Positions 11,646 to 13,202 of a stretch of 64,000 nucleotides of DNA are shown piece after piece. Numbering within the stretch: the first letter of the stretch is position 1; every line of letters begins with the position of its first letter. The stretch lies in the sequence record OR699282.2. One strand, given 5' to 3'. The notes beneath the pieces were generated by a model. It saw only the letters and a program-made list of their open reading frames with translations. It was not told the origin of the DNA and ran no database searches. The translations under genes and the position numbers were made by a program.

Positions 11646-12740
11646 ATGAGTGATTTTTTTGATTCATTTGTCAGTACTGGTACAAGTATTGTAAATGGCG
11701 TTATTGATAATATAAACATTGTTCGTGAACCTGCTTTTCAGAACTATAATGCTGCACAACGTGTGTTTGGTACAGCAGGTGAAATGGGGTTTTCATTTTA
11801 TAATTTACCAAAATTCAAAAATAGTTTTATCATAGAATTTGTTTTAACACCTTTTGCAAAAAACTTTATTAAAACTCAATTACCAGATACACATACAGAT
11901 TTTGATGTTAATAATGTATCATGTTTTGTTAAAGATGTAACTTTACCAAGTTTTTCATTTAATATTGAAACAGTAAACCAATATAACAAAAAACGACTAG
12001 TTACTGGTGACATTGTTTACAAACCAAGTAATGTCGTTTTTTATGATACCGTTGATGGTGCTGGTTACTTACTAATGGATGCATATAGAAAGTTTTATTA
12101 TGGTGATTTCTTTGATAAAAATCCACAGTCATATCGAAATGATGTTCTAAGTACACCTGAAAACTTTAATGGTTTAGGTGGTAACTGGGGACGTTCAGTA
12201 ATGAACAATGGAAACTACGATAATCAGTACTTTTTCAAATCAATTAACATATATGAGATTGATAATGAAACATATACTGTACATAACATGATAAATGTAT
12301 TCATTGAAGACGTACAATTAGAAACCAAATCTATGGAAAGTGAAGCAGACCCTTCATTAATATCGTTAACTATGCGATATGAAGCATGTAACAACTTCGG
12401 ACCAGAAGGATATTTGAGCATTGGTGTACCAACTATGGAAATAGCACAACTAATAACAGACACAGAAGGTCTTGGTGTTAGTGGGTTTTTTAAGTATTTT
12501 GGTGAATTAGACGACAAAACCAAAGGAATTTTAACAATTGGTAAAATTATCCGAGCAGGTACGTCAGTTAGTGATATAATAAGTAGTGCTGGTGATATAT
12601 TGCGTGGTGACATTACTCCTGACACAATTCGAAACATAGGTTCTGCTGTAACCAGAGGTGCTAACGCCATAGGGTTTGGTAGTTTGGTTTCTGAAGCAAG
12701 TTCAAAATTCGGATTAGGTAACATTTTAGGAGATTTTTAA
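11646..12740 (+). CDS. tube-fold baseplate/tail-tube initiator (gp48/gp54-like)
   Basis: [27 protein letters not shown] and SLTMRYE tube-fold pattern; position after the tube genes. Confidence 0.6.
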
Positions 12741-13202
12741 TGGCTTTCAATCAACAATTTAACCCAGCAAAGATAACAAATACTAAGCAAGCTCAAGGTA
12801 TCTTTCCTATAAAAAACATTAAAAAGTATAAAAGTAATAATCAACCAATATACCGTAGTTCGTGGGAAAAGGACATAATGATTTCATTGGATAATAATCC
12901 AGCAGTCATTGAATGGAGTATTGAGCCGTTTAGTATTCCTTATGTTAGTCCAATAGATGGACAAGTCCACCAGTACTGGCCTGATTTTTATGTACTGTAT
13001 ATTGGTGCTGATGGTAAGCAACATGCTCAAGTACTAGAAGTCAAGCCATACAAACAATGCCACATGGAGTTGGCTAAATCCAAAAAAGAAAAAATTGCAG
13101 TTGCTATAAATCAATCCAAATGGGCTTATGCAATGGAATTTTGTAAAAATAACCGGATTGGAGTTTAAAATTATAACAGAAAGGAATCTATACAAAAAAT
13201 GA
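12740..13202 (+). CDS. head completion nuclease (T4 gp4/gp50-like), about 153 aa, needing a +1 frameshift at CGG 13154-13156
   Basis: [25 protein letters not shown] and NQSKW motifs. Frame 0 stops at 13168. The +1 frame supplies [15 protein letters not shown], the expected gp4 C-terminal motif, and its TGA overlaps the next ATG. Confidence 0.88.

Follow-up and report, generated by a model that had tools for sequence, protein, structure and literature searches.

A gp4-like head-completion gene split between two reading frames in Asteriusvirus coliphages, and its probable expression by +1 ribosomal frameshifting at a rare CGG codon

In prfB, the gene of release factor 2 (RF2), the +1 frameshift takes place at CUU_UGA_C, where a stop codon in the zero frame is combined with good re-pairing of the peptidyl (P)-site tRNA (CUU to UUU) and a Shine-Dalgarno (SD)-like stimulator 3 nucleotides (nt) upstream. 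To our knowledge, very few natural cases of +1 frameshifting on bacterial ribosomes have been described (prfB and a few phage structural genes at CCC), these depend on stop codons or re-pairing tRNAs, and it is mainly in mitochondria that corrective, non-slippage shifts at rare sense codons are known. The review PMC5009743 likewise places most known occurrences of the corrective class in mitochondria; in those of glass sponges (hexactinellids), +1 shifts occur at the extremely rare CGG_(A) and UGG_(A), with the insert 5' of GGA, and in Ty1 a rare Arg codon in the aminoacyl (A) site is paired with a Gly +1 codon whose abundant tRNA helps (PMC5009743). Here we describe a 64,000-nt stretch of sequence record OR699282.2, called the window throughout, in which a gp4-like head-completion gene is split between two reading frames by one extra base. 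Most probably, one functional protein is made from it by +1 ribosomal frameshifting at AAC_CGG_A.

The window comes from a jumbo phage of E. coli that belongs to the genus Asteriusvirus (121Q/PBECO4 group); over positions 12000-14000 it shares 99-100% identity with about 20 independent GenBank genomes and about 85% with a further set. The frame-0 open reading frame (ORF) begins with ATG 12740 and ends at TAA 13166-13168 after 142 amino acids (aa), its last codons being TTT 13139, TGT 13142, AAA 13145, AAT 13148, AAC 13151, CGG 13154, ATT, GGA, GTT and TAA. The +1 frame from 13155 reads GGA TTG GAG TTT AAA ATT ATA ACA GAA AGG AAT CTA TAC AAA AAA TGA (15 residues), and its TGA at 13200-13202 overlaps the ATG of the next gene at 13199 (ATGA). 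The preliminary description of this DNA, made from the letters alone, had given the frame-0 end KNN-R-IGV at 13168, the +1 start and this overlap, and every coordinate proved exact. The features concerned are as follows.

12740..13153, plus strand: frame-0 part of the gp4-like gene (TnsA-like, PD-(D/E)xK), 138 codons from Met to ...EFCKNN, with PF08722 and phrog_218 matches.
13148..13160, plus strand: putative shift site AAT AAC C GGA TTG, invariant in eight diverged genomes of good quality and also in the draft CMSTMSU.
13154..13156, plus strand: zero-frame CGG, the sole in-frame CGG among the 19,421 codons of 42 window genes.
13155..13202, plus strand: +1 coding part and its TGA, predicted to encode the final core beta-strand of the nuclease fold and a short helix at its C-terminus, with 14/15 identity to the C-termini of relatives.
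13166..13168, plus strand: frame-0 stop TAA, the predicted end point for non-shifting ribosomes (142-aa product).

The locus shares several properties with the described systems. As in glass-sponge mitochondria, one extra base directly 5' of GGA makes an extremely rare zero-frame codon, a slippery site competent for re-pairing is absent, and the shifted product would be the only useful one; mitochondrial ribosomes and tRNAs operate there, at several sites per genome, whereas here E. coli cytoplasmic ribosomes would decode a phage mRNA, and a single such site was found in the 64-kilobase window. With Ty1 (CUU_AGG_C) and Ty3 (GCG_AGU_U) the site has in common a slow A-site codon, a rare Arg codon in Ty1; with Ty1 also a Gly codon in +1 whose tRNA would compete for the A site, and with Ty3 a P-site tRNA that has little or no potential for +1 re-pairing. 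These two differ from the present case in being eukaryotic and in giving two useful products, Gag and Gag-Pol; Ty3 in addition has a 14-nt 3' stimulator, whereas here only 6 nt past the site are visibly constrained and a stimulator was not found. Like the prfB shift, the event proposed here would be a +1 shift on bacterial ribosomes at a slow A site, needed for a functional full-length protein, but with a rare sense codon and without good re-pairing or an SD-like stimulator. Listeria phages PSA, A118 and A500 (CCC_UGA in tsh; ACA_CCC_(UCC) in PSA cps) also have +1 shifts in morphogenesis genes and also exploit a rare codon class, theirs being CCC in a low-GC genome. In them, however, a second, C-terminally extended structural protein is made in a set ratio, the Pro codon is able to re-pair and a stop codon or pseudoknot helps, while here the shift would restore the ancestral protein and add no extension domain. 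Finally, the domain, the catalytic motif and the C-terminal strand are shared with T4 gp4 and the TnsA N-terminal domain (PF08722, phrog_218), but one uninterrupted ORF encodes the protein in T4-like phages, in cyanophages and in the other jumbo phages of Rak2/GAP32 type that were examined.

The split is genuine and old, and the genomes that carry it are monophyletic. The arrangement is present in more than 30 independent GenBank records from different laboratories, in five sublineages, and all tblastn matches of at least 84% identity that reach the 3' end of the gene continue through the frame-0 tail R-I-G-V/I, so those genomes share it. The preliminary description had allowed for reads with one base fewer; the more than 30 independent assemblies, from five diverged sublineages, keep the base. 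Nine split genomes were compared base by base: the window (here identical to 121Q), WPEC3, Ecwhy_1, A4, Turkey5, JNE01, ph0011, UE-S1 and the draft CMSTMSU. A maximum-likelihood tree built on the first 133-141 codons, reaching as far as the junction, places the split genomes in a single clade of five sublineages (support 87/97; one change on the tree); this clade is sister to EJP2 and Hallingskeid and is nested among single-frame loci (EJP2, Hallingskeid, Munch, GAP32, a Rak2-like locus and metagenome loci). Between the sublineages nucleotide identity is 76-85%, synonymous sites are saturated (synonymous divergence, dS, 0.9 to >3), and the ratio of nonsynonymous to synonymous divergence (dN/dS) is 0.015-0.08. 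Such a low ratio over so long a divergence argues that the gene has been kept functional with the extra base, though a one-base deletion would remove it. The records of CMSTMSU and of Salmonella phage SD-1/2/6 are of draft quality, with homopolymer indels or deletions in and around the gene; CMSTMSU (L014) has one A fewer before the ATGA. These drafts were excluded from the selection tests, for which the eight good-quality genomes were used.

The pattern of substitutions in these eight genomes indicates that both parts of the gene are under strong purifying selection, each in its own frame. Within the 120 nt before CGG, 32 of the 38 variable sites are frame-0 third positions, and so are the last four variable sites upstream of the junction (GAA/GAG, TTT/TTC, TGT/TGC and AAA/AAG, the latter at 13147); when the upstream region is read in +1, all 37 scored variable sites lie in codons with a changed amino acid. 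After the junction, six sites vary (13163, 13166, 13172, 13175, 13188 and 13193), and all six (at least 11 events on the tree) are synonymous in +1, compared with 0-1 in the other frames. As only 19% of random single-base changes would be synonymous in +1, the probability of this outcome is 0.19^6 (P ~5e-5). The 15-residue +1 peptide is identical in all eight genomes. In A4, a TTT to TTC change that is synonymous in +1 abolishes the frame-0 stop and extends frame 0 to 151 aa; hence that stop is not part of any signal. The A4 record (L009:601-1056) carries an annotated 151-aa ORF, the last 13 residues of which (RIGIQNHYRKESI) are an out-of-frame translation of the true C-terminus.

T4 gene 4 has a role in head completion, and the preliminary description had taken the split gene for a gp4-like head-completion gene. 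This identification agrees with PF08722, phrog_218, the alignment and the TnsA-like fold of a relative, which together support the gene as a putative gp4/TnsA-like head-completion homologue. The frame-0 ORF matches Pfam PF08722 (TnsA-like endonuclease N-terminal) with 60.7 bits (cut-off 26.5) and PHROG 218 (head closure) with an E-value of 1.8e-40, and tblastn with the gene matches gene 4 of T4-like phages and cyanophages. The predicted catalytic motif E..PD..ExK corresponds to E62, D82, E100 and K102, all of which are encoded in the frame-0 part and stand in invariant columns of an 8-sequence alignment that includes RB14 gp4. The two gene pieces, taken separately, and natural single-frame relatives served as queries and models. 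The AlphaFold model of the single-frame relative L016 (73% identical) has a predicted local distance difference test score (pLDDT) of 89 and a predicted template modelling score (pTM) of 0.81. A PDB sequence search with the family profile returned nothing meaningful, and a fold search was used instead; its top PDB match for the L016 model was TnsA 1F1Z (probability 1.00, E-value 6e-4). The role of gp4 in head completion is also stated, at the level of annotation, in PMC11895373.

Outside the 121Q-type clade, all single-frame relatives examined (EJP2, Hallingskeid, Munch, GAP32, Kaldavass, the Rak2-like locus L021, IMG/VR loci L016-L020, and metagenome loci L034 and L037) encode the protein in one ORF of 148-156 aa, whose stop codon in most cases overlaps or adjoins the start of the following gene. 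They share the C-terminus ...C(K/Q)xN-G(L/I)EFK(L/I/V)x-TE(K/R)xLY(K/R/G)K(N)*, and the 15-residue +1 piece of the window is identical in 14 of 15 positions to the last 15 residues of L021 and L037 (E-values 1e-8 and 2e-8, respectively), so that its match to the exact C-terminus of relatives is more than chance. Coverage of PF08722 points the same way: the frame-0 ORF covers positions 1-78 of 85, and the single-frame relatives 1-85 of 85 (78-81 bits). No single reading frame of the window gene holds the complete domain with the final beta-strand; this strand (G-x-x-F-x-h-h-T-E, where h is hydrophobic) is encoded at 13155-13181 in +1, and the domain is complete only if the shift is translated. 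The motif is present in all the jumbo-phage relatives; it reads GIKFRILTE in T4-type RB14 gp4 (..RGIKFRILTED..) and KYEFKIMTE in gp4 of cyanophage S-SSM7 (..YEFKIMTED..), with K instead of G in the first position. The motif G-x-x-F-x-(I/V)-(I/V)-T-E of the preliminary description is thus real, but gp4 homologues do not end in it, as had been claimed: the proteins run 5-15 residues beyond. In the L016 model, the equivalent of the +1 piece is a strand at 138-142 (block-mean pLDDT 96) followed by a helix at 144-148, both coming after a long helix at 112-134; block-mean pLDDT over the last ten residues is 78. Given this order of elements (strands, long helix, final strand), the 142-aa product would lack the final strand of the alpha-beta-beta-beta-alpha-beta core and is probably useless.

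Periodicity of variation follows frame-0 third positions up to 13147 and +1 third positions from 13163, which brackets the switch to 13148-13162. Within this bracket the eight good-quality genomes all share the sequence AAT AAC C GGA TTG. Of the degenerate third positions in the frame-0 part, 82% vary, and invariant ones elsewhere come in runs of at most two, yet at the junction four consecutive third positions are invariant (P ~0.001); the shift site is constrained at the nucleotide level beyond coding needs. At the same point the single-frame relatives read AAT GGN, and therefore the extra base of the split clade lies directly 5' of GGA. CGG 13154, which the preliminary description had named as the place of the shift, is the best-supported junction within the bracket and involves the rarest codon of the phage. 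Its alternative, one A too many in 13145-13149, fails, since A4, Turkey5, JNE01, ph0011 and UE-S1 have AAG AAT in place of AAA AAT and retain the split. Turkey5 and JNE01 also have TTC TGT, which breaks the TTTT run, and they too remain split. The A run and the TTTT run are thereby ruled out as slip sites, and the AAG AAT variants rule out a homopolymer miscall, slippage of Lys-tRNA on A_AAA and transcriptional slippage.

Apart from the CGG at the junction, no other in-frame CGG was found in real genes of the window, the remaining CGG-bearing open frames being antisense or overlapping artefacts, while the same trinucleotide occurs in the window genes 62 times in phase 1 and 103 times in phase 2. 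Phage Sharanji, which is 99% identical here, has one further in-frame CGG in about 15.8 thousand codons; it is codon 33 of gp250 (L029:6701-7231), in the context TTC AAA CGG CTG GCT. The only E. coli tRNA that reads CGG is the m1G37-dependent tRNA-Arg(CCG), and its impairment causes a strong A-site pause at this codon (PMC8384417). Judged from codon rarity, CGG would be a slow zero-frame A-site codon at the shift site. Sharanji encodes tRNA-Asn(GUU), tRNA-Gly(UCC) and tRNA-Arg(UCU), and none for CGG, a set that fits the model and gives it circumstantial support. ARAGORN called seven ordinary tRNAs in Sharanji; a tRNA with an expanded anticodon loop (quadruplet-decoding) might still be present. 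A tRNA-Ser was called in the same phage at L030:9471-9562, minus strand, with the anticodon ACT (A34), which is unusual for bacteria. Sharanji has been reported to encode a tRNA-specific adenosine deaminase (PMC11895373).

From these observations we infer that the event is ribosomal, that the slowness of CGG is its driver and that the junction is Asn-Gly rather than Arg-Leu. In the proposed mechanism, frame 0 would be translated through ...Lys-Asn-Asn, bringing AAC 13151-13153 into the P site, and the ribosome would pause at CGG, awaiting the scarce host minor tRNA-Arg(CCG). A fraction of ribosomes would then take Gly-tRNA on the overlapping GGA 13155-13157, skipping C13154, translate 15 residues in +1 and finish at the TGA overlapping the ATG of the gene that follows. 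Non-shifting ribosomes would add R-I-G-V and stop, giving the 142-aa protein without the last core strand. On ACC, tRNA-Asn(GUU) would keep only the first- and third-position pairing; such poor re-pairing makes the event more like a Ty3-type shift without re-pairing than the slippage of Ty1 and prfB. A corrective or programmed shift that operates without a slippery site, an upstream SD or an RNA structure is the best explanation of the locus, and the trans-frame protein is probably required for a viable phage, as the preliminary description supposed.

The gene neighbours of ORF 12740..13168 are a tail-tube gene on one side and a gene of unknown function on the other. The latter, together with its putative ribosome-binding element, is described by two further features.

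13179..13187, plus strand: SD-like GAAAGGAAT for the next gene, lying inside the +1 coding part; assigned by position, 13 nt 5' of ATG 13199.
13199..13753, plus strand: next gene (184 aa, phrog_16202), of unknown function, with an ATG that overlaps the +1-frame TGA.

The role of GAAAGGAAT as the SD of the next gene probably explains a second run of invariant third positions. Because the +1-frame TGA overlaps the next ATG, only shifted ribosomes would terminate at the coupling point. Munch, Hallingskeid, L016 and L021, all single-frame relatives, have the same ATGA overlap; EJP2 has the overlapping ATG too, but the annotated start of the next gene lies about 50 nt downstream. The +1 piece contains an AGG (Arg) at 13182-13184, the third-rarest codon of the window (13/19,421), where single-frame relatives have AAG (Lys); this AGG coincides with the SD-like GAAAGGAAT. 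The product of 13199-13753 has no Pfam match, and its labels vary among hypothetical protein, terminase small subunit (fEgEco12) and heat shock protein (WPEC5). In T4, gene 4 is followed by gene 2 (DNA end protector). Further downstream, a 180-aa ORF at 14321-14863 is labelled 'Hsp70 heat shock protein' in 121Q and WPEC3; it is far below the length of Hsp70 and the label looks doubtful. Compared with the 121Q reference, the window has single-base intergenic indels at 10763-10858 and 18178-18494 (gene coordinates are offset by 1), which marks it as a separate isolate of the group, distinct from 121Q.

Several other explanations of the same data were considered. The frameshift might occur slightly later, CGG being read as Arg and the shift taking place at CGG_A or AUU_G, with the product ...NN-R-LEFK... 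or ...NN-R-I-EFK...; the switch is placed no more closely than 13148-13162, invariance extends to ATT and to the G of GGA, and the product would have the same length. We regard this as unlikely, because Gly is conserved here in all close relatives and in T4-type gp4, that is, from T4 to these phages. Besides, re-pairing of tRNA-Arg(CCG) on GGA would be poorer than that of tRNA-Asn on ACC, the codon AUU is common and fast and offers no reason to pause, and a later junction leaves the rarity of CGG unexplained. Somewhat less probable still is that the 142-aa frame-0 protein is functional as it stands and that the 30 nt past its stop are a spacer conserved for another reason, for example as the ribosome-binding site of the next gene. 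All GenBank records annotate the gene in this way, the catalytic residues are all in the frame-0 part, and the SD-like GAAAGGAAT does sit in the supposed spacer. Nevertheless, variation in this spacer is strictly +1-synonymous by the test given above, including a first-position change (CTA to TTA) and the loss of the frame-0 stop in A4, the peptide it encodes in +1 matches the C-termini of relatives, and the truncated form would have no final core strand.

That the C-terminal strand is made as a micro-peptide from the +1-frame ATG at 13128 and complements the 142-aa protein in trans seems very improbable. Such an ATG exists, formed by the Tyr-Ala codons TAT GCN, but it is not preceded by a Shine-Dalgarno sequence, all 37 upstream variable sites fall in codons where the +1 amino acid is altered, and in JNE01 this ATG is followed, 18 nt upstream of CGG, by a +1-frame TAG beyond which no start codon occurs before the junction; initiation of a separate +1 peptide is thereby ruled out. 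An error of sequencing or assembly (a miscalled A run), or transcriptional slippage on that run, has a negligible chance of accounting for the split. The window does have an A5 run 5 nt upstream, and homopolymer indels do occur among the group's draft records (CMSTMSU, SD-x); yet five genomes with AAG AAT lack the run, two of them having TTC TGT as well, and keep the split, the same arrangement recurs in over 30 assemblies from different laboratories, frame-0 periodicity persists through the A run, and only the dinucleotides CC and GG are left near the junction.

A number of observations weigh against frameshifting at AAC_CGG_A. The selection test after the junction covers only 15 codons, which overlap the ribosome-binding region of the next gene. 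No conserved SD-like element was found within 3-10 nt upstream in the aligned clade genomes, the search for a downstream RNA stimulator by single-sequence folding gave a z of -1.6, and the consensus fold of six sequences (alifold) reached -2.9 kcal/mol with no covariation; an Rfam search gave no match. Re-pairing of the P-site tRNA in +1, as in the Ty1/prfB subtype, is not found either, since moving from AAC to ACC creates a central mismatch with the anticodon GUU. With poor re-pairing and neither an SD-like element nor a structure, efficiency could be low, which may suffice if little of a catalytic head-completion protein is needed. The CGG itself could in part have arisen simply because a C was placed before GGA: out of frame, CGG occurs at 3-5 per 1000 (0.3-0.5% per codon), and its chance over the bracket, about 1-2%, is not negligible. 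Survivorship would still favour exactly such an insertion, one that makes CGG. Phage tRNAs were rejected as a required part of the mechanism, each being present in only some lineages of the clade: by megablast, tRNA-Gly is restricted to the 121Q/PBECO4 group and UE-S1, and tRNA-Asn occurs in a different subset, so neither tRNA-Gly(UCC) nor tRNA-Asn(GUU) can be essential. At the protein level, 'head completion' is absent from the main text of the phAPEC6 paper, including its virion-proteome table, a silence that may be explained if gp4 is absent from virions.

A further-reaching idea, which we put forward only tentatively and consider doubtful, is that CGG is effectively unassigned in these phages and that the single CGG of gp4 is a deliberate sensor. 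If so, the yield of the head-completion nuclease would be set by the availability or the m1G37 status of the single host tRNA-Arg(CCG) during infection, and head completion would be tied to the translational state of the cell, or else a DNA-cutting protein would be held at a very low, safe level. The site would then be the first natural +1 site of the rare-sense-codon, non-slippery (Ty3/mitochondrial) type on E. coli ribosomes, retained throughout the history of the clade although a one-base deletion would remove it.

All GenBank records inspected give the gene as a plain coding sequence of 139-151 aa without a join, except CMSTMSU, which has only a 96-aa fragment. Neither the papers found in searches on the 121Q group and on phage head-completion frameshifting nor the Asteriusvirus genome papers of fEgEco12, Sharanji and phAPEC6 mention frameshifting for this gene. 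The kind of event, a +1 shift at a slow sense codon that restores an ancestral protein, is known; its occurrence in a phage, on E. coli ribosomes, would be new. Gene callers can mask such events behind a plausible truncated ORF, and with recognition of the shift the annotation of this probably essential morphogenesis gene would be amended in over 30 genomes, among them those of several phage-therapy candidates. As Sharanji was isolated on E. coli K-12 MG1655, a coliphage example would offer a genetically tractable system for the non-slippage +1 mechanism on the best-understood ribosome.

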